Source: Mytilus edulis (Eukaryota). From it: a DNA stretch of 64,000 bases. The position numbers and the translations under genes were made by a program. Location of the stretch: positions 15,624,001 through 15,688,000 of the forward strand of contig NC_092355.1 in NCBI RefSeq assembly GCF_963676685.1, read 5' to 3'. Each line of letters starts with the position of its first letter. The stretch's first letter is position 1. Positions 13,684-62,966 of this stretch are shown here, piece by piece. A model generated the notes under the pieces. It searched no databases and was not told the origin of the DNA. It saw only the letters and a program-made list of their open reading frames with translations.

Positions 13684-16298
13684 TGTAAGACTCAAGATCG
13701 ACGTCCGATCTCTAATCGACGTCCGTTCCTCAAATCGACATCCAAATCTGACGTCACAATAACATATCCTTCCAAATCGACGGCCAATGTTATGCCTATC
13801 TAATCGACGTCCATTTTTTTTTTTGGCTTCTCTAATCGACGTCCAATTTCTAGCTTCTATAATAAACGTCCGTTTTGAAACATAATACAAAACTGACAAA
13901 ACCGACAGTAGCCGAAATCTTAAGACCTTTTAACAAATTGTGTGTGACGGATAGGATCTATATAAAAAAAATGTTTAAAAGATTTAAAACATACTAGACT
14001 AAATATGTACACAGGTTGTGATATATATTTTTTTTTAATTTTAGTGATTACATGAAAATAAGGAGATGTGGTATGACATGAATAATGTAAACAATTCAAA
14101 TTAGAAAGTGAACAGTCTTATTTATAAAAAAAAAATCCGAAAATCAAATATGATAGACATAAACCATCAAAAACCACTGCACTACAGACCCATACAGAAT
14201 ATGACTGGGTTAAACAAGTGTGTTAGCACTCAACCTAGAACAGTTGTGTAACAGCACAACATAAAAAATAATGCAAAATGTTTGAGTATATGTTTCAGGT
14301 GTAAAAGTCAAATATTTGTTGCAAAATGTAAGGAAATTTGTCCAAATTATAATACTCTAAATACGATTGGCTATACTTCTATATTTTGTCTATAATTGTT
14401 GAAGAGTGAATAATGTCCTGCAAATGTAGTTTGTTTGGGGTTTGGTGTCGTTAAGTTGCTTTCTCTTAGACATCCAATTACATTAATTAACATGCATAGG
14501 AATGACACACTACTATGTAGATCAATTTGATTAACTTTGTATCAAGATAAACTTTAATATGCATGATACCTATTTCGTGTTGGAAAAAATCTATATGAAA
14601 AGTGTGTATAAATGTTTGAACCCTACAAAATATGTACATAATTAAGGTAACACGATACCGAATGGCATATCTCCCGATTTCCAAACTTTTTGGCACACCT
14701 GTTCTTTGAATCGAGTTACATCGGAATATGTAATAAAACATGGGGGTCACAATTTTTGTTTTCTTGGTATGTTAATAGGAAAACGTCAATTTTGGCGACA
14801 ACTTCACATGGGTATAAGTGGAAATGCCTATTTTTCGGCTTACCTTTTCAGATTTTCCAATGGAACGCTATGTTCTTATATACGGAGAAAAACAAAAAAC
14901 TAACATAATATCCAGGATTGCATAATAAATCCATACACGTAAAGAAACTCTTATGTCACAATTCTTGTTTTTGAGATAAATGGCTTCAAAGTTGATTGAT
15001 ACCCTTAGAATTTGACCGAAAACGTGTGACGTTATTGAATACATAATGTAACGTTGTTCCTACTCAGAGATATGGAAAACAAAATATGTGTCGAGATCTG
15101 AATGGTGTTTATTTTATTTTCATTTACCGTGTCGTGTTTTGTAAATTTCCTCGTAACTGCAATTTGAAATTCTACTGATACAATTTATTTCTTCCTGCAC
15201 ATGGAAATTTCACTCATATGAATTACATTAATCTCGTCTGATTTTCACACCAAACGAGCAAATACTTAAAACTTGCTTGAACTGGTTGGTTCCACGTGAA
15301 TCTGAATATATGATATAGTTCATATATAAATCACCGGAATTTGGTACACGTTATTCAAATAATATCTTTATTCTAAAATTTAATTAAGATTATGAAAAAT
15401 ACCGTATTTTTGTAAAGTTCACGTGAAAATAACATGAAAAATTTCACGTGTGATTCAGTTGAATTACTGACTTTTGTACTTCATTCTTTAAGACAATGGT
15501 GGTGTCATTGCTTCATCCATGCAGAAATAGATTAGTTCAGTTAGAAGTTTTATAATTCTTCGATTTTTGATGAGTGTGTAACGTTCAGTGGCAAATAGTT
15601 CATTCATGTTCAGTACGATACAATACAATTTAGAAAACAGTTGTTTATATAAAAGACACATATGATGCATTAGTCAAAAAAGGTTTAACATTCTGTAAGT
15701 TGTGAAAATTATGAGGGAAAATAATGATCCTGATAAAATACAAATTCTAAAAAATAAAATAACAAAACTCAAAGAAAAATTCAAAACTTATATTCTTGAC
15801 TTGCTACATACATTAGTATAGTGTACCCTGCGTGGTGTAAATGTGTGAGTTGATTTCTCAGCAAGTCGGACAAACATTGCAAACTGTATGAAAAATTTCA
15901 CAAAGTTCAACAGTCTGTCATTTGTGGAAAATTATTTACAAAACAAATCTTGAGATCATATATGCATTCTTTAAGTAAAACAAACTGCGAAAACGTTAAC
16001 TCATGGCGTAACGTCATTCGGTATCGTGTTACCTTAAGTTCAGTAATTTATTATTTATTGATATTAAACATCGATTAAAGACGACTAAATTCAATCGGAT
16101 GTAGTTATGGCAATACATGACGTCACATTGGACGTCGATTAGATGGTTAAGATATTGGACGTCGATTTGACAATGTGGCGTCAGATTTGGACGTCGATTT
16201 GACAATGTGGCGTCAGATTTGGACGTCTATTTGAGAAACAGACGGTGATTTGAGGAACGGACGGCGTTTAGATGCCGGACGTCGATCTGAGACTAACA
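13684..16298. mobile_element. Non-autonomous TIR element with TGT...ACA ends and 4-bp TSD (superfamily unassigned)
   Basis: TGTAAGACTCAAGATCGACGTCCG ... CGGACGTCGATCTGAGACTAACA; many subterminal TCGACGTCC motifs in inverted orientation; TSD CATA (13680-13683, 16299-16302). Confidence 0.8.
14646..16033. mobile_element. Kolobok-like non-autonomous DNA transposon nested in the 13684-16298 element
   Basis: Perfect 19-bp TIR GGTAACACGATACCGAATG / CATTCGGTATCGTGTTACC, TTAA on both sides. Confidence 0.85.
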
Positions 16299-16303
16299 CA
16301 TAT

Positions 16304-17129
16304 ACTAGAGGTTACAATGAGCCTGTGTCGCTCACCTGATATTTTTATTTTATTGATGCATGAAATGATGTTATCGTTATACTTTTGATTTAGTTTCAGA
16401 GATATAAGTCAAAAACTACATTTCCCCCTATGTTCTATTTCTAGTCATGTCTGTCATGTTGGTTAGCAGCATGGTGATGAGGCACATTTTTTTTTAAACT
16501 AAATACACTTATGCTTATTGTGACCAAGTTTGGTTAAATTTATATGAGTTGTTTCAGATGACTTTTGTAAAAGATACAAAAATTTGCGAAAAATTGTTAA
16601 ATTTTGTCTTTAAAGGGCAGTAACTCCTTATGGGATCCATTGAACATTTTAATCATGTTCGACTTATTGTAGATCTTACTTCACTGAACAATATTGCTAT
16701 TAACAGTTTATCGTTGTCTATAGTAAAATTCAAGATAATTACCTAAAACTGCAAAATTTCCTTAAAATTACCAATTCAGGTGCAGAAACCCAACAAAGGG
16801 TTGTCCAGTTTGTCTGAAAATTTCAAGGCAAATAGATCTGGAACTGATTAACTATTTTACCTCATGTCAGATTAGCTCTAAATACTTTGGTTTCAGAGAT
16901 ATAAGCCAAAATATTCATTTACCCGTATTGCTTTTTCAGCCATGTTAGTTGGCCGGGTCATCGGACACATTTTTTAAACTAGATATCACAATAATTATTG
17001 TGGCCAAGTTTGGCTCAGTAGTTTAAGAGAAGGAATTTTCTGTAAAGGTAAACGACGACGGACAACGGACGACGAACGCCAAGCGATGAGAAAATCTCAC
17101 TTCCCACTTTGCGCCAGGTGAGCTAAAAA
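16304..17129. mobile_element. Helentron-associated (HINE-like) non-autonomous element
   Basis: 5' GCTCACCTG matches 3' CAGGTGAGC, GACG-type microsatellite near the 3' end, terminal hairpin followed by an A-run. Confidence 0.55.
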
Positions 17130-17526
17130 CGAAACTTGTACTCTGATACGTCATTGTTTAATACATATAGTTTAATGAACAAGATATATTTACAATTATT
17201 CAGTGTATCCTTTTATCTTGTTTTAATTGTTTCAATGGGCTAAAAATTCATCGTGTTCATCTAAATGCTGATCAACAATGCAATTGGATGAAAAGAATTA
17301 TACGTATCTATACATGCTATAGGAAAGTAGAATGCTTCTGCTACATAAATATTGGCTGTTTTTGACAATACAATACACATATATCGGGTACAAGCATCCT
17401 TAAGTCATGCTAAGTTACTGAAATCCTCACAGTTTTACATTTAAGTTAAATTTTAGACGGTTTCCGTCTTCAATGAAAGTCATTCTTAACATTGAAATGT
17501 AAGTTGCATTTGATGATAATACATAT

Positions 17527-18666
17527 TGTTACGGTTTAGGGTATAAGCTGTAGGTTTGTACATACGACTCTATCGGGCTACTCAGTAAACACTCATTTCT
17601 ATTTTTGCGTTCGTCGTTTATTGTTAGCCAACGCGTATACAAAGACATTTGATGAACATTATGTATACTTATATATTGTTATTGTATGTAAATATTGTTA
17701 GTAAGGTATTTGGGAAAAATAGTATAGAGTTCGTCTTCATTGTTTGACCATGGGGGGTTCCCTGACTGAACGACTGTTCCCACCTTCTGTTTACCCTTAT
17801 TTCACACGTTCCTGCTTTATTACCTTGTTATTTTATTAGCGTAAGGCATGAATATTGTAACCGGGGCCCATACATGCTAAGAGTAAGCTTAGATAAGTCC
17901 CGTTTGTCCATTTCCCGACTCGACAGAATGTCAACATTCCGATCGCCGCCATTTGCATCACTATGTTTATTGACGTCAGTGACCTAATGACCTGAGATCA
18001 GCATCCAATCAGCATAACGTTATTTGCCCACCATCTCCATAGGGGCACGAGAAGTTGGTGGGACAGAGATATAAAAGCAAGTGCACAACAGTCTTCAGCT
18101 AGACTGCGGCCCGCTACCAGGGCAGTCACTCCTGATACCAAGGAAACTTACCAAAGGCAAGCAAACCAAAAGTGCCGCAGTCGATGCAATACATGTACCT
18201 TTGCATCCCCGTTGGATAAATGGACCAAACCATAATTGACCTAGATGTTTTACTACGTGTACTACGATGTTGACAAACGATTAACGTACCGAAAAGGGGG
18301 GTCTCTGTATATTTTATCAAGTGTTCTGTTGGGTTTTCATGTAATTTATACTTGGAATAGTATTGAATGTTTTGTATATAATAAATTGTGAAGCTTTATT
18401 AATCTTGTTATCTGTTGTACATGTAGTTAGTAAGTCAATGTAAATGAGTTTCTGTGCTACCATATTTAGACCAATGCCTTAACTGTTTTGCCTGCTACGC
18501 TACCATAGTCTTGACCATTTTACCAGCTACGCTACCAGTATAACTTAGTTTGTAACTCGACACCAGAGTTGACAGATCTATACTAGAATTTACCAAGAAT
18601 AAAGTAACCAGTGTGTTAACCTCATAATAATACCTTTTACTTTTGGGACACCCCCGTCCCGTAACA
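17527..18666 (+). repeat. 5' LTR (1140 bp)
   Basis: TG...CA ends with an 8-bp inverted repeat; differs from the 3' LTR at about 5 positions seen by eye (17661, 18259, 18263, 18411, 18602). Confidence 0.95.
17945..18077 (+). promoter_or_regulatory. LTR U3 Pol II promoter
   Basis: GCCGCCATTT (YY1-like), ATTTGCAT octamer 17951, TGACGTCA CRE 17971, TGACCTaaTGACCT DR2 17980-17993, CCAATCAG 18005, TATAAAAG 18070; AATAAA at 18380; all duplicated in the 3' LTR. Confidence 0.7.
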
Positions 18667-18669
18667 TTT

Positions 18670-18687
18670 TGTGTCCGGCGGTGGGAT
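18670..18687 (+). other. Degenerate primer-binding site (tRNA-Leu-like)
   Basis: TGTGTCCGGCGGTGGGAT 3 nt after the LTR; the last 10 nt match the tRNA-Leu-type PBS TGGTGGCAGCGGTGGGAT but the canonical TGG is absent. Confidence 0.55.
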
Positions 18688-18790
18688 ACGTATAAAACCA
18701 CACCTTGAGAGTAGAGACTTGAACCCGTATATATAATTTATGAAATTTTTTAACTTACTTGTACAACAGAGTTTCATTTAAACAATTAAC

Positions 18791-19855
18791 ATGAGTAGTT
18801 GCGTTAGTCCTTCAGAAAATTATGTTCCTGACAGTCGTGCATCTACCCCAGTTAGTGATAAATCTTGTGCATCAAGGCCAGATGATGTAGTAAATACCAT
18901 GAATAAGAAGGTTGAGGTCTATACAAATATAGTAAACCAGTTCAGTAGAAATTTGAATACCCTAGGGGACCGTTTTAATAGATTTGAAACACAGTTAAAG
19001 ATAAATAATGAAAAAGTAGAAAAGCTTGAAAATCTTTCTGAATTACTTTTAAGTAGTATATCGAAAATAGAAGACCAGGTGGCAAATTTGTGTATGAGTG
19101 TTTTAGATAAAATACCAAAAGTTACCAATGATTGTTCATGTGAGAATACAAGTTCTAATGTTACCAATAAAGTATGCGGGAGTAGTGAATCAAACCAGTT
19201 GTCTAACCGAGAACCAGTATGCATCGAGACTATAGGGTATACAAAACCATCAAAATATGATGGGACCACTAACTGGCTTGAGTACAAGTTACATTTTGAG
19301 GCTGTTGCAAAATTAAATAATTGGTCTGAAGATATAAAAGTTTTAAAGCTTATTACATGTATGAATGGTGCTGCTTTGTCGACTTTAGCTGATATTGAGA
19401 TAGATAATATCCCAACATATTGTTATTTAGTTAAACTGTTAACCAAAAGGTTTGCTCCTGAAAACCTGACAGATGTATATATGTCACAAATTGATGCTTG
19501 TGTTAGAAAACCAGGTCAACCATTGCAGGAACTGGCGGATAATATAAAAAGGCTAGTCAGAATGGCTTACCCATCCGCGAGTCTCGATACCAGAGACTAT
19601 TTAACTTATAGGGCATTTAGAAAAGCACTAAATGATCATGATTTAGAATTGGCTATTGTACAAAGCAATGTAGAAACCATTGACGGAGCGTTGTACTGTG
19701 CTCTGAAATATGAAACGTTTAGGGATAGAGAGAAAAAGTTTAGACAGCAACCAAAATCTGAAACGTCTGTTTGTATGAATGCCAAGGCAAACCAGACCTG
19801 TTATTTCTGTAATGAGAAAGGACACGCCATTAGAGACTGTCCTAAGAGAACTTAA
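18791..19855 (+). CDS. gag: Retrotransposon Gag (N-terminal coiled coil, Ty3/Gypsy capsid, CCHC zinc knuckle)
   Basis: Intact 354-aa ORF; heptad-rich LNTLGDRFNRFETQLKINNEKVEKLENLSELL; capsid motif KPSKYDGTTNWLEYKLHFEAVAKLNNW; C-terminal CYFCNEKGHAIRDC (CX2CX4HX4C), then stop. Confidence 0.92.
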   Translation: MSSCVSPSENYVPDSRASTPVSDKSCASRPDDVVNTMNKKVEVYTNIVNQFSRNLNTLGDRFNRFETQLKINNEKVEKLENLSELLLSSISKIEDQVANLCMSVLDKIPKVTNDCSCENTSSNVTNKVCGSSESNQLSNREPVCIETIGYTKPSKYDGTTNWLEYKLHFEAVAKLNNWSEDIKVLKLITCMNGAALSTLADIEIDNIPTYCYLVKLLTKRFAPENLTDVYMSQIDACVRKPGQPLQELADNIKRLVRMAYPSASLDTRDYLTYRAFRKALNDHDLELAIVQSNVETIDGALYCALKYETFRDREKKFRQQPKSETSVCMNAKANQTCYFCNEKGHAIRDCPKRT

Positions 19856-20237
19856 TCGTTAATGTTTGTTACATTCAGATACCATGAATGTTAGCATGTG
19901 AACATGTTTTTTTTATATATATATTTGTTATGAAAATGAGATTTTTACCAGTAATAGTCATTTTCGATACCTGAAAGTGAGTTTTGTACCAGTAATACTT
20001 GTAGTAATTTTTGATACCGGAAAATGAGTTTGTTAAATATTTCAGTATTTTTATAAAGAGTTGCACCTCGTTAAATATTTATTGTTCTATCAGTTGAAAC
20101 TGCAGAGGTGGTGTTATGTACGCATTCATGTTACCAATGAATAACCTTTTTATAGACCATTGTATGATAAACAGAGTTGTATGGTTGGACCTTTTTTGAC
20201 TACAGTATTATTTACTAGTATACAGAAATATTCTGAT

Positions 20238-20806
20238 TGACTCATCGACGTGTCTGTGTGACGGATGGAAGGTCTGTGGAATATTTTTATTTGGTATTGT
20301 CCCGGTGACTCACCGACGTGTCTATGTGACGGGTGGAATGTCTGTGGAGTATCATACAGTATTTGATTTACCTATATTAGTTTACCAGTGTTCACGGTGA
20401 CTCATCGACGTGTCTGTGTGACGGATGGAAGGTCTGTGGAATATTTTTATTTAGTATTGTCCTGGTGACTCACCGACGTGTCTGTGTGACGGGTGGAATG
20501 TCATACAGTATTTGTTTTACCTATATTAGTTTACCAGTGTTCCCGGTGACTCATCGACGTGTCTGTGTGACGGATGGAAGGTCTGTGGAAAATTATTTTT
20601 ATTTGGTATTGTCCCGGGGACTCACCGACGTGTCTAAGTGACGGGTGGAATGTCTGTGGAATACCAAGCAGTATTTATGTTACCAATTTTAGTTTGCCAG
20701 TGTTCCAGGTGACTCATCGACGTGTCTGTGTGACGGATGGAAGTTCTGTGGAATATTTTCATATGGTATTGTTGTGATTCGCTGACGTGTCTTTGTGACG
20801 GGTGAC
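20238..20806 (+). repeat. Internal array of 8 alternating A/B repeats (about 4 x 150-160-bp dimers) in the retroelement 3' region
   Basis: Core TGACTCA(T/C)CGACGTGTCTGTGTGACGG(A/G)TGGAA at 20238, 20306, 20398, 20466, 20547, 20618, 20710, 20775. Confidence 0.95.
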
Positions 20807-21196
20807 ATGCACAATTTAAAGTACCATTTATTTAGCCACTTATTTATTTGAACCAACTGTACCATGAAGTTTAAACCAAGTAGAGCAAGCACTTTACATT
20901 GAAACAAGATATATACTAATATCCAGAGTTGTGAGTATCTCAATTCCAGAGATACAATATTATACCATGTTTAACACCATATTATTGACACCAGAATTAT
21001 AGTACAAATGTTTGATCTCAGTACCAGATATCGAAACTATAGAACTAATGATGATTATTGTGATTAATTTACCATGTCGACAGAGCCAGCAACCACACAA
21101 AGAAGATCCGGTTTTATTTTTTTAGTAGGTTGATAAGTAGGTATTTATTAGGTAGGTGTTCTATTATTTTTAAGTTCGAGGACGAACTCTTATCCT

Positions 21197-21209
21197 GGGT
21201 TGGGGGTAG
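21197..21209 (+). other. Polypurine tract
   Basis: GGGTTGGGGGTAG immediately 5' of the 3' LTR, preceded by TTCGAGGACGAA. Confidence 0.75.
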
Positions 21210-22349
21210 TGTTACGGTTTAGGGTATAAGCTGTAGGTTTGTACATACGACTCTATCGGGCTACTCAGTAAACACTCATTTCTATTTTTGCGTTCGTCGT
21301 TTATTGTTAGCCAACGCGTATACAAAGACATTTGATGAACATTGTGTATACTTATATATTGTTATTGTATGTAAATATTGTTAGTAAGGTATTTGGGAAA
21401 AATAGTATAGAGTTCGTCTTCATTGTTTGACCATGGGGGGTTCCCTGACTGAACGACTGTTCCCACCTTCTGTTTACCCTTATTTCACACGTTCCTGCTT
21501 TATTACCTTGTTATTTTATTAGCGTAAGGCATGAATATTGTAACCGGGGCCCATACATGCTAAGAGTAAGCTTAGATAAGTCCCGTTTGTCCATTTCCCG
21601 ACTCGACAGAATGTCAACATTCCGATCGCCGCCATTTGCATCACTATGTTTATTGACGTCAGTGACCTAATGACCTGAGATCAGCATCCAATCAGCATAA
21701 CGTTATTTGCCCACCATCTCCATAGGGGCACGAGAAGTTGGTGGGACAGAGATATAAAAGCAAGTGCACAACAGTCTTCAGCTAGACTGCGGCCCGCTAC
21801 CAGGGCAGTCACTCCTGATACCAAGGAAACTTACCAAAGGCAAGCAAACCAAAAGTGCCGCAGTCGATGCAATACATGTACCTTTGCATCCCCGTTGGAT
21901 AAATGGACCAAACCATAATTGACCTAGATGTTTTACTACGTTTACGACGATGTTGACAAACGATTAACGTACCGAAAAGGGGGGTCTCTGTATATTTTAT
22001 CAAGTGTTCTGTTGGGTTTTCATGTAATTTATACTTGGAATAGTATTGAATGTTTTGTATATAATAAATTGTGAAGCTTTATTAATCTTGTTAACTGTTG
22101 TACATGTAGTTAGTAAGTCAATGTAAATGAGTTTCTGTGCTACCATATTTAGACCAATGCCTTAACTGTTTTGCCTGCTACGCTACCATAGTCTTGACCA
22201 TTTTACCAGCTACGCTACCAGTATAACTTAGTTTGTAACTCGACACCAGAGTTGACAGATCTATACTAGAATTTACCAAGAATATAGTAACCAGTGTGTT
22301 AACCTCATAATAATACCTTTTACTTTTGGGACACCCCCGTCCCGTAACA
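21210..22349 (+). repeat. 3' LTR (1140 bp)
   Basis: Near-identical copy of 17527-18666. Confidence 0.95.
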
Positions 22350-23032
22350 ATATCATATGTAAAGGTTTAAGATGAACACGGATGCGGCCATTTTCATTTT
22401 TGTCAAAAAACATCTGAAAAGTGGCATTTTTTAATAGATTTTCATATATAAGCTTGAATTGGAGCGTTTTTAATGACTACATCGGTTAAAAAAATTCACA
22501 TTAACTAATTAAATCAACTGAAATAGACACTTTAAAGTTGAAAAAAGTGTCCAAAATCTTTCGTTAGATGAACCTGAAATTTAAGACCAAAATCGTCCCT
22601 TACCGGACATACTCCTTTATTTCGAATCCAGATTGACATATGTTTCGAAGACGTGAAATAAATAGCCAATACTATATACGTCTGAGAAGAGTTCATTCCT
22701 GTTAGAATGAAAGTAAGAAGATATCAAAGGTACGAAAAGAAATCTAAGAATTAGAAATACATAAATAACAAAGAGAAGGCAAATTCATTAAACGTCACAA
22801 CTAGGCTTGAAATAAGTAATAGAAATCCCATTCTCAAATATCCAAATACATTCATATATATAGCATGATATTTGTCTATTTTGATTACAACATGTATATG
22901 GATACATATATCAGCCAAAGTTATTTGTTTATTCCATCCACATTTGCAATTTCATGTTATAACCAGTTTTTTAGAATGTATTTGTAACACTCATAAACGT
23001 GTCCATCCCCTCAAAATCAGGACGCTAAACAT

Positions 23033-24214
23033 ATAAAAGAGGGACGAAAGATACCAAAGGGACAGTCAAACTCATAAATCTAAAACAAACTGACAACGCC
23101 ATGGCTAAAAATGAAAAAGACAAACAGAAAAACAATAGTACACATGACACAACATAGAAAACTAAAGAATAAACAACACGAACCCCACCAAAAACCAGGG
23201 GTGATCTCAGGTGCTCCGGAAGGGTAAGCAGATCCTGCTCCACATGTGGCACCCGTCGAGTTGCTTATGTGATTACAAATGCGGTAAATAGTCTAATTCG
23301 GTCACATTCATGAAAGGGAAGGGGATTGTAGTTACGACGTAAGGAACATATCCGATATCATTTGTGAAACGGTTATTCCATAACGGTCAACCAACTCGTG
23401 ATGGCGTCCGTAAAATTTACGAAGGGATGATTTCAACTTCACCATTTGGAACTCTTGATTTAATAGCTTCCTTGTGAGCAGTAACCCTCTATCAAGAAAA
23501 TCATGATAGGAAATGCAAGCACGGGAATATCGTATCAATTGGGAGATATATACCCCGTATGCAGGTGCTGCTGGAATGTTGCTACTTAGAAATGGAAAGT
23601 TCACAATTAGAAAGCTAAAATCATCTCTTTTGTCGTAAAGTTTTGTTTTCAACCGACCCTCATTGTCAATTTCTAGATGTAAGTCAAGATATGAAGCCGA
23701 CTTAACTGTATCTGTAGTATCCTTTATCTCCAATTCGATGGGATAGATGCGTTCCACATAGTCACCAAATTTTGAATTGTTTAGTGAAAGAACGTCATCT
23801 CTATAGCGGAAAGTAGAGTTTAAGGATATTGCTAACTTCTTATCTTTCTTCCTAAGAAGTTCCTGCATGAAGTCAGCCTCATAATAATAAAGAAACAAGT
23901 CGGCAAGTAGAGGGGCACAGTTTGTTCCCATTTGGGATGCCGACAGTCTGTTGAAAAACCCGTCCTCCGAACGTTACAAATATGTTGTCAATCAAGAAAT
24001 CAAGCATCTTGATAACATCGGTTTCAGAGAATATTTTGTTTGAATCAGAATGATTCTTTACAAAGTATGATTTATCCCTCCCTTAGACAAGATACTTGTA
24101 TCTACGTTGGCCATTCTTTTTTATGAAGCAAAGTAATACCAACTCTTTCAATTTGTCTTTTAGTTTGGAATATGGAATACTTGTGTACAGAGTAGAAAAG
24201 TCAAATGTTTTTAT
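23033..24214 (-). mobile_element. 5'-truncated Penelope-like retroelement (RT pseudogene plus 3' repeat)
   Basis: KTFDFSTLYT..QQTVGIP/MGTNCAPLLADLFL..RYRDD..KLYDKRDDF..SNIPAAPAYGVYISQLIRY; frameshift near 23932, internal stop, RT catalytic motif reads YRDD; the 3' repeat recurs at ~34487. Confidence 0.85.
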
Positions 24215-49400: not shown

Positions 49401-52400
49401 AGCGCAAATGACCATAGTATTTGCATGGAGCGAAAATGGCCATGGTGTTTGCATGGAGCGCAACTGGCCATGGTGTTTGCATGGAGCGCAAATTAAATGT
49501 GTATAGTGTTTGCATGGAGCGCAAAAGTCCATAGTGTTTGATTGGGGCGCAACTTTTCATAGCGTTTGCATGGAGAGCAAAAATCCAATTGTGTTTGATT
49601 GGGGTGAAAATTTTCACAGCGTTTAAATATCGAGCAAACGTCCAAAGTGTTTGCAAGGAGCGCAAATGTTCATAGCGTTTGCATGGAGAGCAAATGCCCA
49701 TAGTGTTTGCATGGAGCGTCCATGTCAATAATGTTTGCATGGAAAGTAAATGTCCATAGTGTTTGCATGGAGCGCAAATGTCCATAATGTTTGCATGGAG
49801 CGAAAATGTCCATAGTGTTTGTATGGAGAGCAAAACTCCATAGTGTTTGATTGAGGCGCAAATTTTCATAGCGTTTAAATGTCGAGCAAACGTTCAAAGT
49901 GTTTGCATGGAGAGCAAATGTTAATAGCGTTTGCATGGAGAGCAAATGCCCATAGTGTTTGCATGGAGGGTTCATGTCAATAGTGTTTGCATTGAGAGAA
50001 AACGTCGATAGTGTTTGCATGGAGAGTAATGTACATAGTGTTTGCATGGAGAGTAATGTACATAGTGTTTGCATGGAGAGTAATGTACATAGTGTTTGCA
50101 TGGAGCAAAAATAGCCATAGTGTTTGCATGGAGCGCAAATGTCCATAGTGTTTGCATGAAGCGCAAATGTCCATAGTGTTTACATGGAGCTCAAATGTCC
50201 ATGGTGTTTACATGGAGCTCAAATGTCCATGGTGTTTATACCGAGAGCAAATGTCCGAAGTGTAAATGAACATAGTGTTTGCATGGAGCGCAAATGCCCA
50301 TTGTGTTTACATGGAGAGCAAATGTCCATGTTGTTTACATAGAGCGCAAATGCCCATTGTGTTTACATGGAGAGCAAATGTCCATGGTGTTTACATAGAG
50401 CGCAAATGCCCATTGTGTTTACATGGAGAGCAAATGTCTATCGTCTTTACATGGAGAGCAAATGCCCATAGTGTTTAAACGGAGAGCAAATATCCATGGT
50501 GTTTAAACGGAGAGCAAATGCCCATAGTGTTTAAACGGAGAGCAAATGTCCATGGTGTTTACATAGAGCGCAAATGTCCATAGTGTTTATACCGAGAGCA
50601 AATGTCCGTAGTGTAAATGAACATAGTGTTTGCATGGAGCGCAAATGCCCATTGTGTTTACATGGAGAGCAAATGTCCATGTTGTTTACATGGAGAGCAA
50701 ATGTCTATCGTCTTTACATGGAGAGCAAATGCCCATAGTGTTTAAACGGAGAGCAAATGTCCATGGTGTTTAAACGGAGAGCAAATGCCCATAGTGTTTA
50801 AACGGAGAGCAAATGTCCATGGTGTTTACATAGAGCGCAAATGTCCATAGTGTTTATACCGAGAGCAAATGTCCGTAGTGTAAATGAACATAGTGTTTGC
50901 ATGGAGCGCAAATGCCCATTGTGTTTACATGGAGAGCAAATGTCCATGTTGTTTACATGGAGAGCAAATGTCTATCGTCTTTACATGGAGAGCAAATGTA
51001 CATAGTGTTTACATGGTGAGCAAATGTCCATGGTGTTTGCATAGAACGCAAATGTCCATGGTGTTTACACGAAGAGCGAATGTCAATAGTGTTTACATTG
51101 AGAGCAAATGTCCATGCTGTTTACATAGAGAGCAAATGTCCATGGTGTTTACATAGAGAACATATGTTTATGGTGTTTACATGGAGAGCAAATGTCCATG
51201 ATGTTTACATGGAGAGCAAATGTCCATGGTGTTTACATACAGAGCAAATGTCCATGGGGGTTACATGTAGATACATGGAGCGCAAATGTCCATGGTGTTT
51301 ACATGGATAGCAAATGTTCTTTAGTTTTTACATGGTGCGCAAATGTACATGGTGTTTACATGTAGATACATGGAGCGCAAATGTCCATGGTGTTTACATG
51401 GAGAGCAAATTGTTTTTAGTTTTTACATGGAGCGCAAATGTCCATAGTGTTTACATGGAGAGCAAATGTCTGTAGTGTTTACATGGAGCACAAATGTCCA
51501 TGGTGTTTACATGAAGAGCAAATGTCTATAGTGTGTACACGGAGAGCAAATGTCCATCGTGTTTACATGGAGAGCAAATGTCCATAGTGTTTCCATGGAG
51601 AGTAATGTACATAGTGTTTACATGGATCGCAAATGTCCATAGTGTTTAGATGGAGAGTAATGTACATACTGTTTGCATGGAGCGCAAATGTCCATAATGT
51701 TTACACGGAGAGCAAATGTCCATAGTGTTTACACGGAGAGCAAATGTTCATGGTGTTAACATGGAGCGCAAATGTCCATGGTGTTTACGAGAGCAAATGT
51801 CCATGGTGTTTACATGGAGCGCAAATGTCCATGGTGTTTACATGGAGAGCAAATGTCCATGGTGTTTACATGGAGCGCAAGTGTCTATGGTGTTTACATG
51901 GAGATCAAATGTCCATGGTGTTTACATAGAGAGCAAATGTCCATGTTGTTTACATGGAGAGCAAATGTCTATCGTCTTTACATGGAGAGCAAATGTCCAT
52001 AGTGTTTAAACGGAGAGCAAATGTCCATTGTGTTTACATGGAGAGCAAATGTCCATGGTGTTTACATAGAGCGCAAATGTCCATTGTGTTTACATGGAGA
52101 GCAAATGTCCATAGTGTTTACATGGAGAGCAAATGTACATAGTGTTAACATGGAGAGCAAATGTCCATAGTGTTTACATGGAGAGCAAATGTCCATAGTG
52201 TTTAAACGGAGAGCAAATGTCCATTGTGTTTACATGGAGAGCAAATGTCCATGGTGTTTACATAGAGCGCAAATGTCCATAGTGTTTACATGGAGAGCAA
52301 ATGTCCATAGTGTTTACATGGAGAGCAAATGTCCATAGTGTTTACATGGAGAGCAAATGTCCATAGTGTTTAAACGGAGAGCAAATGTCCATTGTGTTTA

Positions 52401-55400
52401 CATGGAGAGCAAATGTCCATGGTGTTTACATAGAGCGCAAATGTCCATAGTGTTTACATGGAGAGCAAATGTACATAGTGTTTACATGGAGAGCAAATGT
52501 CCATAGTGTTTACATGGAGAGAAAATGTCCATAGTGTTTAAACGGAGAGCAAATGTCCATTGTGTTTACATGGAGAGCAAATGTCCATGGTGTTTACATA
52601 GAGCGCAAATGTCCATAGTGTTTACATGGAGAGCAAATGTCCATAGTGTTTACATGGAGAGCAAATGTACATAGTGTTTACATGGTGAGCAAATGTCCAT
52701 GGTGTTTACATAGAACGCAAATGTCCATGGTGTTTACACGAAGAGCGAATGTCAATAGTGTTTACATGGAGAGCAAATGTCCATGCTGTTTACATAGAGA
52801 GCAAATGTCCATGGTGTTAACATGGAGCGCAAATGTCCATGGTGTTTACGAGAGCAAATGTCCATGGTGTTTACATGGAGCGCAAATGTCCATGGTGTTT
52901 ACATGGAGAGCAAATGTCCATGGTGTTTACATGGAGCGCAAGTGTCTATGGTGTTTACATGGAGATCAAATGTCCATGGTGTTTACATAGAGAGCAAATG
53001 TCCATGTTGTTTACATGGAGAGCAAATGTCTATCGTCTTTACATGGAGAGCAAATGTCCATAGTGTTTAAACGGAGAGCAAATGTCCATTGTGTTTACAT
53101 GGAGAGCAAATGTCCATGGTGTTTACATAGAGCGCAAATGTCCATTGTGTTTACATGGAGAGCAAATGTCCATAGTGTTTACATGGAGAGCAAATGTACA
53201 TAGTGTTAACATGGAGAGCAAATGTCCATAGTGTTTACATGGAGAGCAAATGTCCATAGTGTTTAAACGGAGAGCAAATGTCCATTGTGTTTACATGGAG
53301 AGCAAATGTCCATGGTGTTTACATAGAGCGCAAATGTCCATAGTGTTTACATGGAGAGCAAATGTCCATAGTGTTTACATGGAGAGCAAATGTCCATAGT
53401 GTTTACATGGAGAGCAAATGTCCATAGTGTTTAAACGGAGAGCAAATGTCCATTGTGTTTACATGGAGAGCAAATGTCCATGGTGTTTACATAGAGCGCA
53501 AATGTCCATAGTGTTTACATGGAGAGCAAATGTACATAGTGTTTACATGGAGAGCAAATGTCCATAGTGTTTACATGGAGAGAAAATGTCCATAGTGTTT
53601 AAACGGAGAGCAAATGTCCATTGTGTTTACATGGAGAGCAAATGTCCATGGTGTTTACATAGAGCGCAAATGTCCATAGTGTTTACATGGAGAGCAAATG
53701 TCCATAGTGTTTACATGGAGAGCAAATGTACATAGTGTTTACATGGTGAGCAAATGTCCATGGTGTTTACATAGAACGCAAATGTCCATGGTGTTTACAC
53801 GAAGAGCGAATGTCAATAGTGTTTACATGGAGAGCAAATGTCCATGCTGTTTACATAGAGAGCAAATGTCCATGGTGTTTACATAGAGAACATATGTTTA
53901 TGGTGTTTATGTAACAAAAAATTTGTTCCGGCATGACAATTGTTCCGCTGGAACAAATTTCATAGGAAATATGTTCCATCGGAACTTATGTCACAGAAAA
54001 TATGATTCAGTACTATAAAATTTGTTCCGGAACTAATTTTTTAACTAAGTGTGAAATAAGTTCCGGAACAAAATTCACAGCACCATGAGTTTTGTTCCAA
54101 TATTGAAATTTAAAAAAAAGTGAAATAAGTTTGTGTGATATTAGTTTTGAACGAAAGTATTTTATAGAAATCAATGAAAATGTTCTGCTCGAATCTATTT
54201 AACAGAAAATATGTACTGTGCTTGCATGGAGTATATTTGCAATTGAAGGCATGACTGTAGGGATGAAGATAAGAAATAAAAGCGATGATAATGTATCATA
54301 ATTTGTATCTATGTTTTATCCTTTATGTGGTATTCCACCTCCTTGTTTCCTGTTGATCTGTCATGGGTGTTCTAATCATACATGTACTTAGCTATGGTCA
54401 TTGCACAGTTTTAAAAGAGTGTGTCTTTTGTTTCTTTGTATTCTAATATAATTGATCAGTCACTTTGTCCTTTTAAAAAAAGTACAAATGTTCATCTTTA
54501 ACTATTATAATACTTTTTTTCGGAATGACTTTTATTATTATTTCTTATTCTACTCTTTCTGGTTCATAAGTGTCATTTTTAATATTATTAATTGAGTATG
54601 TTATTAAACTTTTGCATTGCTCCACATGATCCAAATTGGATGTTTAAACTTTTTATTTATTACCTTTTTAATATCAATATAATACACGTTTTTGTAATGA
54701 CTTTCAACTCACTGATGACAAGTGCTCAGTATACATAAGATAACTTGTTTAACCAGTGGAACATATTTCATAGACACGGAACTTATTTCACCAGGTGAGG
54801 AACAAATCTCACAAATCCAGAACATATTTCACCAGGTAAGGAACAAATCTCACAAACATGGAACTAATTTCACTAGGTAGGGAACAAATTTCACCATCCC
54901 AGAACTTATTTCACCAGGTAAAGTGTGGAACTTTTTTCATATAAATGGAACAAATTATATAGAAATTGTCTGTGAAAAAAGTTCTCCCAGAACATATTTC
55001 CTGTGAAATTAGTTCCACTGGAACTTTTTTCACAGGAACAAATTTTGGCTCACATTTACATGGAGAGCCAATGTCCATGATGTTTACATGGAGAGCAAAT
55101 GTCCATGGTGTTTACATAGAGAGCAAATGTCCATGGGGGTTACATGTAGATACATGGAGTGCAAATGTCCATGGTGTTTACATGGAGAGCAAATTTTCTT
55201 TAGTTTTTACATGGTGTTTACATGTAGATACATGGAGCGCAAATGTCCATGGTGTTTACATGGAGAGCAAATTTTCCTTAGTTTTTACATGGAGCGCAAA
55301 TGTCCATAGTGTTTACATGGAGAGCAAATGTCTGTTGTGTTTACATGGAGCACAAATGTCCATGGTGTTTACATGAAGAACAAATGTCTATAGTGTGAAC

Positions 55401-56027
55401 ACGGAGAACAAATGGCCATCGTGTTTACATGGAGAGCAATTGTCCATAGTGTTTCCATGGAGGGTAATGTACATAGTGTTTACATGGATCGCAAATGTCC
55501 ATAGTGTTTAGATGGAGAGTAATGTACATACTGTTTGCATGAAGAGCAAATGTCCATGGTGTTTACATGGAGAGCAAATGTCCATAGTGTTTACACGGAG
55601 AGCAAATGTCTATGGTGTTAAAATGGAGCGCAAATGTCCATGGTGTCTACGAGAGCAAATGTCCATGGTGTTTACATGGAGCGCAAGTGTCTATGGTGTT
55701 TACATGGAGATCAAATGTCCATGGTGTTTACATAGAGAGCAAATGTCCATGTTGTTTACATGAAGAGCAAATGTCCATAGTGTTTAAACGGAGAGCAAAT
55801 GTCCATGGTGTTTATATGGAGAGCAAATGTCCATGGTGTTTACATGAAGAGCAAATGTCCATGGTGTTTACATGGAGAGCAAATGTCCATAGTGTTTACA
55901 TGGAGAGCAAATGTCCATGGTGTTTTGATGGATAGCGAAAGTCTATAGTGTTTAGATGGAGAGCAAATGTCCATAGTGTTTACATGGAGAGCAAATGTCC
56001 AGAGTGTTTACATGGAGCACATATGCC
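49401..56027. repeat. 28-bp satellite with higher-order repeats
   Basis: Unit AATGTCCATRGTGTTTACATGGAGAGCA; near-exact 1061-bp tandem duplication (identical ORF-track entries at 51954/53015 and 51772/52833). Confidence 0.97.
53910..55054. mobile_element. Non-autonomous TIR element with TGT...ACA ends and 4-bp TSD, inserted in the satellite
   Basis: TGTAACAAAAAATTTGTTCC / GGAACAAATTTTGGCTCACA; TSD TTTA; many GGAAC/GTTCC subterminal motifs; empty paralogous site at ~51171-51190. Confidence 0.9.
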
Positions 56028-56499: not shown

Positions 56500-58387
56500 G
56501 GTATCTTTTTGTGATTCAATTAGGAACACAGTTCTCTTTGTGATTTAAACAAAAGCTCAGTTCTCTGTGGGATTCAAGCAGGAAATTAATTTAAAAAAAA
56601 AAGGGAACTTATATTTCTCTGTGCGACTCAAACAGGAATACAATTTTCTTTGTGATCCAAACATGAACGTAGTTCACTTTGTGATTCAAACAGGAACTTA
56701 GTTCTCTTTGTGATTCCATTAGGAACCTAATTTTCTTTGTGATAAAAAGGAACTTATAGTTCTATGTGCGACTCAAACAGGAATCTAGTTCTCTTTGTGA
56801 TTCAATTAGGAACCTAGTTCTCTTTGAGATTTAAAAAAGACTGTAGTTTTCTGTGTGATTCAAACAGGAACCTAATCCTCTTTGTGATTCAAACAGGAAC
56901 ATAGTTCTCTTTTGAATTCGATTAGGAAACTTGTTCTCTTTGTGATTTAAACAGGAACCAAATTATCTTTGTGATTCAAAGCGAACATAGCTATCTCTAA
57001 GATTCATGCAGAAACGTAGCAATCTTTGTGATTCAAACAAGAACCTAGTTATCTTTGTGATTTAAAAGAAACTTATAGTTCTGTGTGATTGAAACAGGAA
57101 CCTAGTTCTCTTTGTGATTCAATTAGGAACCTAGCTATCTTTGAGATTCAAACAAGAACTTCGTTCTTTTTTTTTTATTAAAACAGTTACCTAGTTCTCT
57201 CTGTGATTCAATTAGGAAAATAATTCTCTTTGTGATTTAAAAAGTAACTTATAGTTTTTTTGTGTGATTCAAACAGGGACCTAGTCCTCTTTTAGATACA
57301 ATAAGGAACCTAATTCTCTTTGTGATTCAAACAGGGACCTAGTCCTCTTTGTGATACAATAAGGAACCTAATTCTCTTTGTGATTCAAACATGAACCTAG
57401 TTCTCTTTGTGATTCAATTAGGAACCTAGCTATATTTGAGATTCAAACAAGAACTTCGTTCTCTTTTTTATTAAAACAGTTACCTAGTTCTCTCTGTGAT
57501 TCAATTAGGAAAATAATTCTCTTTGTGATTTAAAAAGTAACTTATAGTTTTTTGTGTGATTCAAACAGGAACCTAGTCCTCTTTTTGATACAATAAGGAA
57601 CCTAATTATCTTTGTGATTCAAACAGGAACCTAGTACTCTTTTTGATTCAATTAGGAACCAGTTACCTAGTTCATTTTGTGATTTAAACCGTAACTTAGT
57701 TCTCTTTGTGATTTAAACAGGAACCTTATTCTCTATTTATTCAAACAGGAACAAGTTATCTCTGCGATTCATGCAGGAACGTACTTCTCTTTCTGATTCA
57801 AACAGGAACCTAGTTCTATGTGTAATTCAATTAGGAACCTAGTTCTCTTTGTGATTTGAAAAGAAACTTATAGTTCTGTGTGATTGAAACGGGAACCTAG
57901 TTCACTTTGTGATTCAATTAAGAACCTAGTTCTCTTTTTGAATCAATTAGGAACCTAGTTCTCTTTGTGATTTAAACAGGAACCTAGTTCTCTTTGTGAT
58001 TTAAACATAAACTTAGTTCTCCGTATGATTCCAACAGGAACCTATTTCTTTATGTGATTCAAACAGAAACAGTTCTCTTTGTGATGCAAACAGGAACCTA
58101 ATTATCTTTGTGATTCAAACAGGAACCTAGTTCTCTATGTGATTCAAACCAGAACCTAGTTCTATGTGCGTTTTTTACATTAACCTGTGATTAAATAGGA
58201 ACTTAGTCTCTTTTTGTGATTCGATATGAAACTAGTATTATTTTGTGATTAAATAGGAACCTAGTCTCTTTTTGTGATTAGATATGAAACTAGTATTATT
58301 TTGTGATTAAATAGGAACCTGTTTTATTTTGTGATTAGATATGAAGTCCCTTTTTGTGATTAAATAGGAACCTAGTGTCTTTCTGAT
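56500..58387. repeat. ~29-bp satellite
   Basis: Unit GTGATTCAAACAGGAACCTAGTTCTCTTT, diverged copies. Confidence 0.9.
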
Positions 58388-59689: not shown

Positions 59690-59969
59690 TTAAACAGTAG
59701 TCTAGCATCTCTAAATGTGCTTGAGGCTGGAATATGGTTTCACTTTATGATAAAACAGGAATATGAAATCACTTTTTGATTGACACGATATCTTGTCTGT
59801 CTTAGTAATTTTAACAGGAACATATGTCTGTTTCAGTAGTAAACATGAACAAAGTCTCTATTTGAAATTAAACATAAACAAAGTCTCTCGTGAAATAGAT
59901 AACAAGACTTCCTCTGTGACTTAATGAGAAACCAAGTTTATTTTTGTGATTAGTCTTATTTTGTAACAA

Positions 59970-60370
59970 AGATAGGAATCAAGTCTTATATTGTGATCAA
60001 GACAGGAATCTAGTCGTATATTGTGATCAAGACTGGAATCTATATTTTGATCAAGACAGGAATTTAGTCGTATAGTGTGATCAAGACAGGAATCTAGTCT
60101 TATACTGTGATCAAGACAGGAATCTAGTCATATATTTTGATCAAGACAGTCATCTAGTCTTATATTGTGATCAAGACAAGAATCTAGTCTTATATTGTGA
60201 TCAAGATAGGAATCTAGTCTTATATTGTGATCAAGACAGGAATCTAGGATTGAATTGTGATCAAGACAGGAATCAAGGATTGTATTGTGATCGAGACAGG
60301 GGCCAGGGATGATATTGAGATCAATGCAGGAATCAAGTCTTATATTGAGATCAACATGATTAAGACAGGA
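59970..60370. repeat. 30-bp satellite
   Basis: Unit TGTGATCAAGACAGGAATCTAGTCTTATAT. Confidence 0.92.
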
Positions 60371-60840: not shown

Positions 60841-61872
60841 TTGTGATTAAAACTGAGGAACAGCCATAAGTCTTAGTTGTGATTAAATCAGGAACAACCA
60901 TAAGTCTTTGTTGTGATTAAAACTGGAACATCCATAAGTCTTAGTTGTGATTAAAACTGAGGAACAGCCATAAGTCTAAGTTGTGATTAAAACTGAGGAA
61001 CAGCCATAAGTCTTAGTTGTGATTAAAACTGGAACAGCCATAAGTCTTGGTTGTGATTAAAACTGAGGAACAGCAATAAGTCTAAGTTGTGATTAAAACT
61101 GAGGAACAGCCATAAGTCTTAGTTGTGATTAAAACCGGAAGAGCCATAAGTCTTAGTTGTGATTAAAACCGGAACAGCCATAAGTCTTAGTTGTGATTAA
61201 ATCAGGAACAGCCATAAGTCTTACATGTGATTAAAACTGAGGAACAGTCATAAGTCTTAGTTGTGATTAAAAATGAGGAACAGCCATAAGTCTTAGTTGT
61301 GATTAAAACTGGAACAGCCATAAGTCTTAGTTGTGATTAAATCAGGAACAGCCATAAGTCTTAGTTGTGATTAAATCAGGAACAACCATAACTCTTTGTT
61401 GTGATTAAAACTGGAACATCCATAAGTCTTAGTTGTGATTAAAACTGAGGAACAGCCATAAGTCTAAGTTGTGATTAAAACTGAGGAACAGCCATAAGTC
61501 TTAGTTGTGATTAAAACTGGAACAGCCATAAGTCTTGGTTGTGATTAAAACTGAGGAACAGCAATAAGTCTAAGTTGTGATTAAAACTGAGGAACAGCCA
61601 TAAGTCTTAGTTGTGATTAAAACCGGAACAGCCATAAGTCTTAGTTGTGATTAAAACCGGAACAGCCATAAGTCTTAGTTGTGATTAAATCAGGAACAGC
61701 CATAAGTCTTACATGTGATTAAAACTGAGGAACAGTCATAAGTCTTAGTTGTGATTAAAAATGAGGAACAGCCATAAGTCTTAGTTGTGATTAAAACTGG
61801 AACAGCCATAAGTCTTAGTTGTGATTAAATCAGGAACAGCCATAAGTCTTAGTTGTGATCAAACCAGGAACA
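60841..61872. repeat. 34/36-bp satellite with a 488-bp higher-order repeat
   Basis: Unit TTGTGATTAAAACT(GA)GGAACAGCCATAAGTCTTAG; variant order repeats between 60877 and 61365. Confidence 0.95.
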
Positions 61873-61964
61873 AACTGTTTCACTACCGCTATGCGATTCA
61901 GCAAAAACAAAAAAGTCTTCCATATTATTCAGTGATTAAATCAGGAACTAGCTGCAGTCTCATT

Positions 61965-62966
61965 TTGTGTTCAATGTAGAATCAATATCTACTTTATGCT
62001 CAATGTAGAATCAATATCTACTTTATGCTCAATGTAGAATCAATATTTACTTTGTGCTCAATGTAGAATCAATATTTACTTTGTGCTCAATGTAGAATCA
62101 ATATTTACTTTGTGCTCAATGTAGAATCAATATTTACTTTGTGCTCAATGTAGAATCAATATTTACTTTGTGCTCAATGTAGAATCTTGTGCTCAATGTA
62201 GAATCAATATTTACTTTGTGCTCAATGTAGAATCTTGTGCTCAATGTAGAATCAATATTTACTTTGTGCTCAATGTAGAATCAATATTTACTTTGTGCTC
62301 AATGTAGAATCAATATTTACTTTGTGCTCAATGTAGAATCAATATTTACTTTGTGCTCAATGTAGAATCAATATTTACTTTGTGTTCAATGTAGAATCAA
62401 TATCTACTTTATGCTCAATGTAGAATCAATATTTACTTTGTGCTCAATGTAGAATCAATATTTACTTTGTGCTCAATGTAGAATCAATATTTACTTTGTG
62501 TTCAATGTAGAATCAATATCTACTTTATGCTCAATGTAGAATCAATATTTACTTTGTGCTCAATGTAGAATCAATATTTACTTTGTGCTCAATGTAGAAT
62601 CAATATTTACTTTGTGCTCAATGTAGAATCAATATTTACTTTGTGCTCAATGTAGAATCAATATTTACTTTGTGCTCAATGTAGAATCAATATTTACTTT
62701 GTGCGCAATGTAGAATCAATATTTACTTTGTGCTCAATGTAGAATCTTGTGCTCAATGTAGAATCAATATTTACTTTGTGCTCAATGTAGAAACAATATT
62801 TACTTTGTTTTCAATGTAGAATCAATATTTACTTTGTGCTCAATGTAGAATCAATATTTACTTTGTGCTCAATGTAGAATCTTGTGCTCAATGTAGAATC
62901 AATATTTACTTTGTGCTCAATGTAGAATCAATATTTACTTTGTGTGCTCAATGTAGAATCAATATT
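61965..62966. repeat. 29-bp satellite, highly homogeneous
   Basis: Unit TGTGCTCAATGTAGAATCAATATTTACTT with occasional 19-bp deletion units. Confidence 0.97.

Follow-up and report, generated by a model that had tools for sequence, protein, structure and literature searches.

A higher-order tandem repeat in the 3′ untranslated region of a gag-only LTR retrotransposon of Mytilus edulis

The locus and the element that carries the array

The DNA analysed here, called the window in what follows, is a stretch of 64,000 nucleotides from Mytilus edulis (contig NC_092355.1, positions 15,624,001 to 15,688,000 of the forward strand), and it contains no N. An LTR retrotransposon of about 4.8 kb spans positions 17527–22349, and a tandem array occupies much of the space that follows its gag gene (Table 1). 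The two LTRs are 99.5% identical (1137 of 1143 aligned positions, when the 5′ LTR is compared with 21207–22349). Both carry a perfect TGACGTCA, a CCAAT box and a TATAAA box in a promoter-like order; in the 5′ LTR the cAMP-response-type element (CRE) TGACGTCA is at 17971, CCAAT at 18005 and TATAAA at 18070. The target-site duplication amounts to only 4 bp in AT-rich DNA, and is a weak sign taken alone. The reverse complement of the PBS-like stretch looks like the T-arm and acceptor end of a tRNA, with one mismatch in TGG; tRNA genes were found nowhere in the window, so that there was none to compare with it. At the other end of the internal region, the PPT-like run lies where a polypurine tract is expected. 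Eight nucleotides upstream of that run lies a perfect 6-bp hairpin, AGTTCG-AGGA-CGAACT (21173–21188).

Table 1. Features of the retrotransposon and of its array, in window coordinates
Feature	Position	Strand	Remarks
Left target-site duplication ATAT	17523–17526		same four bases at 22350–22353
5′ LTR, 1140 bp	17527–18666	+	TG..CA ends; inverted termini TGTTACGG/CCGTAACA
PBS-like stretch	18669–18687	+	read from sequence; 3 nt past the 5′ LTR
Intact Gag ORF, 354 aa	18791–19855	+	coiled coil; capsid-like domain, aa ~150–316; one CCHC zinc knuckle
Second short tandem repeat	19931–20035	+	~2.3 copies, period 41–47; between gag stop and main array
Tandem array	20238–20806	+	four AB dimers (160, 149 and 163 bp, the last one curtailed)
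Unit starts, first half of array	A1 20238, B1 20306, A2 20398, B2 20466	+
Unit starts, second half of array	A3 20547, B3 20618, A4 20710, B4 20775	+
Putative hairpin, unit A2 as example	20403–20427 (CATC 20403–20406, GATG 20424–20427)	+	RNAalifold consensus and pair counts; low ensemble probability
MSTEPATTQ-encoding stretch	21074–21100	+	matches start of Mytilus coruscus gene model P0005
PPT-like G-rich run, T-interrupted	21197–21209	+	read from sequence; adjoins the 3′ LTR
3′ LTR, 1140 bp	21210–22349	+	direct repeat of the 5′ LTR
Right target-site duplication ATAT	22350–22353		matches left copy

The identity of the single intact reading frame comes from its relatives. Pfam recognised a zf-CCHC domain, the zinc knuckle at nt 19796–19846, and assigned nothing to the rest of the protein. 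The sequence shares 98% identity with predicted Mytilus galloprovincialis proteins and 70–85% with several from M. coruscus. An exhaustive search returned 5702 relatives (E up to 0.001), aligned over residues ~150–316, while a search of viral contigs found nothing. The longer relatives continue, after the knuckle, with gag-asp_proteas/RVP_2, RVT_1, RT_RNaseH_2 and Integrase_p58_C. This is the PR-RT-RNaseH-IN domain order of Ty3/gypsy elements, and the 354-aa ORF is therefore a Gag.

Nothing of a pol gene accompanies it. Gag-Pol polyproteins compared with the window by tblastn match at 19109–19849 only, leaving no pol remnant, and the plus strand has no ORF of at least 30 aa between the Gag stop (19855) and the array. 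The element is thus non-autonomous. The end point of the ORF is shared: in four relatives, belonging to two Mytilus species, the Gag ORF ends at the same position, directly past the knuckle, and none of the close Gag relatives (at least 50% identity) is fused to pol. A reading made beforehand from the sequence alone, the sequence-only reading below, had described a gag-only element with an array where pol should be, and this is indeed the arrangement found, the array lying between the Gag stop at 19855 and the 3′ LTR at 21210. We are confident that the array is the repeat block of the 3′ untranslated part of the internal region, and that its carrier is a young, non-autonomous LTR retrotransposon of Ty3/gypsy type in Mytilus, with gag as its only gene.

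Two gene models touch on the family of this element. Downstream of the array, some 110 nt ahead of the 3′ LTR, the MSTEPATTQ-encoding stretch is identical in 8 of 9 positions to the first nine residues of P0005, a gene model of M. coruscus which then continues into Gag; this likeness may reflect either a tandem arrangement of elements or a different order in M. coruscus. In M. edulis itself, the first 50 residues of P0008, a PPIB gene model, are 96% identical to the Gag residues encoded at 19361–19510. P0008 contains a fragment of the array-bearing element's family, which annotation has made the beginning of a cyclophilin gene model.

The surroundings are rich in repeats of other kinds. Directly upstream of the LTR element, inverted repeats at 13695–13878 and 16123–16288, 2.2–2.5 kb apart, comprise reiterated CGACGTCC-type sub-repeats, and the right one includes a 32-bp tandem repeat (16150–16234); the pair resembles the termini of a DNA transposon that has subterminal repeats. 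On the minus strand, 1 kb downstream of the LTR element, a 199-aa ORF (23332–23931) has no Pfam match; we take its RYRDD motif to resemble the active site of reverse transcriptases. The final 15 kb of the window are mostly minisatellite. A 28-bp unit with 56- and 84-bp higher orders fills 49401–53909 and 55055–56017 (~4.5 kb and 1 kb, roughly 160 and 31 copies), and it is the cause of the strong G-over-C skew at 50–56 kb. Four further arrays (56615–58382, 59951–60354, 60841–61872 and 61964–62966) are made of unrelated 29–34-bp units, one of them with higher-order periods of 174 and 488 bp at 98% identity.

Layout of the array

TRF describes 20238–20804 as a tandem repeat of period 160, with 3.6 copies and a score of 832. 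This period is that of a dimer. A conserved core of ~45 nt is present in eight copies, which follow one another in ABAB order and make up four AB dimers of ~160 bp. A repeat finder places seven copies in register, with start-to-start spacings of 68, 92, 68, 81, 71 and 92, and the decayed eighth unit starts 65 nt past the seventh (20710 to 20775). A 19-nt central motif occurs eight times, always on the plus strand and always within the array, against 0.00 expected from shuffles. Type A units read CATC, 17 nt, GATG, and are followed by a short linker; type B units read CACC, 17 nt, GGTG, and are followed by a long one. Unit 8 reads CGCT..GGTG, where G-U pairing is possible. All this agrees with the sequence-only reading: TRF, the repeat finder and the motif count reproduced every number of its eight-unit array, the arms of the two types were found as it had given them, and so was the capacity of the last unit to pair through G-U. 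Its palindrome, by contrast, was credited to most units and is exact, over 13 nt, in B1 only; four units have one mismatch and A4 has two, while A1 and B4 lack it altogether. The centre of this palindrome is odd.

The array stands alone in the window. A covariance model of the unit, run with filters off, recognised no further diverged unit in the 5′ leader or in the rest of the window, which does not hold a second array copy either. In public collections the 19-nt motif matched 41 metagenome and 22 prokaryote-genome loci, once in each and with no extended similarity, which is about the number expected by chance; it was not found in viral contigs, nor did a literature search find the core motif as a literal string. 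A protein-coding repeat was ruled out, since the periods are not multiples of three and the ORF of the array (67 aa) is without a protein homologue. The TACCAG motif of the second short repeat reappears in the long linkers of the array.

Variation in cores and linkers

Cores and linkers have not changed at the same pace. An alignment of the four AB dimers has variable positions at 5 of 90 sites in the cores and at 16 of 70 in the linkers (Fisher p = 0.0018), which makes the cores about four times less variable than the AT-rich linkers over the time that has passed since dimer amplification. The comparison counts variable sites on the dimer alignment, as a gapped global alignment overfits and yields a spurious 86% identity. 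Between types A and B the cores show 3 fixed differences in 45, while the linkers differ in both length and sequence. A central block, GACGTGTCT..GTGACGG, is invariant in all eight units, the decayed last one included. In that last unit the central 25 nt are nearly intact, whereas the left flank has 5 changes in 13.

Lower variation in the core than in the linkers points to selection acting on the core while the family replicated, and suggests that it has probably been preserved as a repeated cis-acting site for protein binding, rather than as filler. Judging from the paralogous units of one array copy, we lean, if only slightly, towards a constrained cis-element. Against this, biased gene conversion among eight similar cores could imitate the low core variation, and misalignment in linkers prone to indels could imitate the contrast between the two. 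The age of the array is another matter. Divergence between dimers is ~11–15%, far above the 0.5% that separates the LTRs, which argues that the array predates the insertion and was carried through replication.

Folding of the units

The sequence-only reading saw in the units a hairpin, the arms of which had changed together between types A and B. RNAalifold, given the eight units, does return the stem in question, lengthened to 5 bp and followed by a 4-nt bulge and an inner hairpin (4-bp UGUC/GACG, 5-nt loop), with a consensus energy of −7.5 kcal/mol; in unit A2, taken as an example, the 17-nt interval encloses this inner hairpin. The structure has 9 pairs, and standard pairing is found in all 72 of its 72 cells. 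A single pair differs in both partners between the types: it is U-A in all four units of type A and C-G in all four of type B. In unit 8 the stems carry three changes, each confined to one side, and pairing is preserved each time, as G-U or U-A. The stems are free of other substitutions, and loop positions 41–42 differ in three units.

Thermodynamics tells a different story. Compared with dinucleotide shuffles, single units have z-scores of −1.5 to +1.1 on either strand, and the whole array folds with a z of +0.46 on the plus strand and +0.67 on the minus strand. Minimum-energy folds of single sequences never use the register of the proposed stem. Taken alone, the 4-bp stem contributes −2.4 kcal/mol in A units, against −4.4 kcal/mol in B units; its probability in the ensemble is 0.16–0.42 in A units and 0.01–0.03 in B units, where a shifted register outcompetes it, and within the complete array this probability falls to ~0 for most units. 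A stable, reiterated hairpin is therefore not upheld, the shuffle z-scores being unremarkable and the stem nearly absent from the predicted B ensembles. A unit hairpin is possible, but these predictions do not favour it thermodynamically.

The compensatory change survives in part. There is one register in which the differences between A and B, CAT/CAC and GGA/GGG, complement each other, and it is the one that RNAalifold chooses. In the competing register, however, the same differences fall into two independent pairs, which are stronger in B, and compensation vanishes. Chance is a further consideration: when 3 random core substitutions were simulated, a pair changed on both sides within a 4-bp helix appeared in 1.1–1.6% of trials under strict Watson-Crick rules, and in ~7% once G-U was allowed in the helix. 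The caveat which had accompanied the claim, namely that a covarying pair copied by duplication is one evolutionary event, stands.

More familiar RNA structures were set aside. Rfam gave no match at E up to 1 over 17000–23000, hammerhead families included, and this excluded a hammerhead, a retrozyme or another described RNA family. Pre-miRNA-like hairpins were likewise excluded, as the folding energies of the units, only −12 to −20 kcal/mol, do not surpass those of shuffles. Cyclisation, whether with the 5′ leader or with some other part of the transcript, was rejected too, no reverse-complement word of at least 10 nt being present.

A proposed origin and role

How might such an array have come into being? 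An ancestral unit of ~70–90 bp may have been duplicated, its two copies then diverging into A and B, and the resulting 160-bp dimer would afterwards have been amplified to about four copies. Amplification could have taken place when reverse transcriptase switched templates between co-packaged RNAs, or else through unequal recombination; passages of PMC7004042 report that abnormal strand transfer has been proposed as the origin of the 3′UTR repeats of plant Ogre/Tat elements. Thereafter the core would have been retained as a reiterated cis-acting protein-binding site, a role which does not require a stable hairpin. The cores might then constitute a cluster of bZIP-type DNA sites, working as an internal enhancer for the CRE-bearing LTR promoter. 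Taken as a whole – a repeat block, amplified as a dimer, with a constrained core for which reading as DNA is narrowly preferred – this is in our judgement the best explanation, with its chances of being right evenly poised.

Its last component is the most fragile. With one AP-1-type heptamer and two (T/C)GACG half-sites to a unit, there are 24 putative sites overall, and TGACG is found nine times in the array. The AP-1 consensus TGACTCA had been presented too generously in the sequence-only reading: it is exact in six of the eight units (six of the window's nine occurrences) and gone from B3 and B4, a loss which itself counts against recognition as DNA. One duplicated unit accounts for all the copies of these bZIP-type sites, and they are weak evidence. 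Recognition as DNA would fit well with an LTR promoter endowed with a perfect CRE, and with conserved cores set in variable AT-rich spacers, as in the Su(Hw) array of gypsy. Yet nearly any 80-nt unit can be expected to offer one known factor or another a perfect 7-mer. Moreover, the array lies upstream of the 3′ LTR, unlike the known enhancer repeats of retroelements, which are mostly in U3 or in the 5′UTR. That bZIP-type factors read the core as DNA is thus a tentative proposition, which the sequence pattern places narrowly ahead of reading as RNA; the bZIP enhancer array, at first put forward as a mere alternative to the RNA hairpin, is at least as likely. The points in favour of DNA and of RNA are each a one-in-tens coincidence at best, and all of them derive from one founding unit.

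Alternative explanations

The most serious rival denies the core any sequence-specific role. The array would be a pure passenger, left behind by reverse-transcription template switching or by unequal recombination where the loss of pol had lifted the constraint of coding, and it may seed satellite DNA. No other reading has so strong a precedent, that of Ty3/gypsy 3′UTR repeats: in plants, passages of PMC7004042 describe these as common, hypervariable and without assigned function. The same UTR harbours a second short repeat (19931–20035), and the many other minisatellites in the window indicate that this genome readily forms tandem arrays. Decay of the terminal unit resembles what happens at the edges of neutral arrays, and folding no better than chance is what a passenger would display. 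It is in the cores that this account meets its difficulty. It leaves unexplained the fourfold contrast with the linkers, the survival of the centre of unit 8 next to a damaged left flank, and the near identity of A and B cores between linkers which differ in length and sequence. An inert array is a genuine possibility, still well short of probable.

Reading of the core as RNA by Gag, through its nucleocapsid (NC), stands nearly level with reading as DNA and is, on the sequence features at hand, somewhat doubtful. Its most explicit version is that of the sequence-only reading: every unit would act as a structured signal in the RNA, for packaging, for dimerisation or for recruiting Pol, and the multimer would load gag-only RNA into particles supplied with Pol by a helper, which the element would out-compete. 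The stem picked by RNAalifold, with all its cells paired, and the double change from U-A to C-G which keeps the pair, speak for it; so do the wobble-type pairing changes of unit 8, which are meaningful for sense RNA only. The sense strand is 64% G+T and has eleven TCTGTG, all of them sense-oriented. When the Gag profile was compared with the PDB its best matches, weak ones (E 0.07–0.1), were to the NC knuckle of MoMuLV, a protein with a single zinc knuckle which binds exposed UCUG of the packaging signal (PMC7599994). Most of the structural observations go the other way. Neither units nor array have excess stability, the stem is rare in B units and has practically no place in the folded array, and the covariation is a single event, open to chance and absent from the competing register. 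There is no Rfam match, no unit outside the array, no complementarity of at least 10 nt to the remaining transcript, and the palindrome is odd-centred and exact in one unit only. We know of no retroelement packaging signal made of eight 3′UTR repeats. Altogether, we consider a structured signal of this kind rather unlikely.

A bolder form of the same idea is that an animal gag-only element has swapped pol for a multimerised binding platform of its own nucleocapsid. This platform would comprise eight units rich in G and U, with a small hairpin and a pair of UCUG-type motifs apiece, so that the RNA of the element would be favoured in particles with helper Pol. Such an outcome is unlikely.

It is very unlikely that array and flanks together form an independent element nested in the LTR element and derived from the pearl/MgE/Helentron group of bivalves, for, although the period of 160 bp and the 3.6 copies recall the central repeats of those elements (up to six, of ~160 bp, with MgE known from Mytilus galloprovincialis; PMC7492417), the 160 bp are here a dimer of related 68- and 92-bp units instead of a single monomer, and no terminal inverted repeats, Helitron-type ends or flanking microsatellite were recognised around the array. 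A constrained cis-element read by means other than DNA or Gag/NC is barely conceivable, and there is a slight chance that the explanation lies outside all those listed.

Comparison with known systems

The element is a non-autonomous LTR element like TR-GAG, with a tandem repeat in its 3′UTR: it is of an ordinary kind, and a new case in bivalves. The plant TR-GAG and the mussel element both have two LTRs, PBS- and PPT-like ends, one intact gag ORF and no pol, and both are presumed to be mobilised by an autonomous relative. The TR-GAG literature that we found concerns plants only, whereas the host is here a bivalve; the mussel element differs further in that a long, higher-order tandem array takes up much of the space after gag. 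Bivalves, Mytilus among them, also have TRIMs, which are non-autonomous LTR elements but, unlike the gag-bearing mussel element, have no ORF (PMC6934838).

Tandem repeats in the 3′UTR are found in Ty3/gypsy elements of the plant Tat/Ogre group, as described in passages of PMC7004042 which cite Macas et al. 2009. The mussel array has the same position, between the last ORF and the 3′ LTR, and is distinguished by its animal host, by the association of a conserved core with a variable linker and by its ABAB higher order. As for layout, the closest parallel is the insulator of Drosophila gypsy, where 12 Su(Hw) sites, with variable AT-rich sequence between them, extend over 340 bp of the 5′UTR (PMC2374998). 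In both cases a short core is reiterated among AT-rich spacers in an untranslated region of a Ty3/gypsy element. The mussel array, however, has 8 copies in 570 bp and lies in the 3′UTR, and the motifs are unrelated; the likeness is one of layout.

With the packaging signal of MoMuLV (PMC7599994) the array shares G/U-rich motifs in the sense orientation, UCUG included, and a Gag with a single CCHC knuckle. Several cis-acting RNA signals of retroviruses are located near the 3′ end. The constitutive transport element of MPMV and the direct repeats of RSV are such signals, and the mussel array is likewise near the 3′ LTR. These retroviral signals, by contrast, are present in one or two copies and have well-supported structures, where the mussel array has eight copies, one covariation event and no excess stability. 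Finally, pearl/MgE arrays (PMC7492417) and the mussel array have in common a bivalve host, short dispersed arrays on non-autonomous elements and a 160-bp period. The carrier is different, since it is here an LTR element with gag, and the 160 bp correspond to an AB dimer. The resemblance to MgE/BIV160 is one of description and period.

Significance

This element adds a bivalve example to the gag-only LTR retrotransposons so far described mainly in plants and, with its array, an animal case to the 3′UTR tandem repeats of Ty3/gypsy elements, also described mainly in plants. It points, further, to a possible way in which satellite-like arrays of ~160 bp might spread in mussel genomes, with an LTR element as carrier rather than one of Helentron type. 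What else it means depends on how the core is read. Should stress-responsive bZIP factors read it, as in the explanation that we tentatively prefer, each insertion would be a portable enhancer. Should the reader instead be the Gag that the element encodes, we would have a natural model of a parasite of a parasite securing its packaging; and, were the nucleocapsid platform to be true, we would be faced with a naturally evolved, self-contained module of 'capsid plus cargo-tag'.
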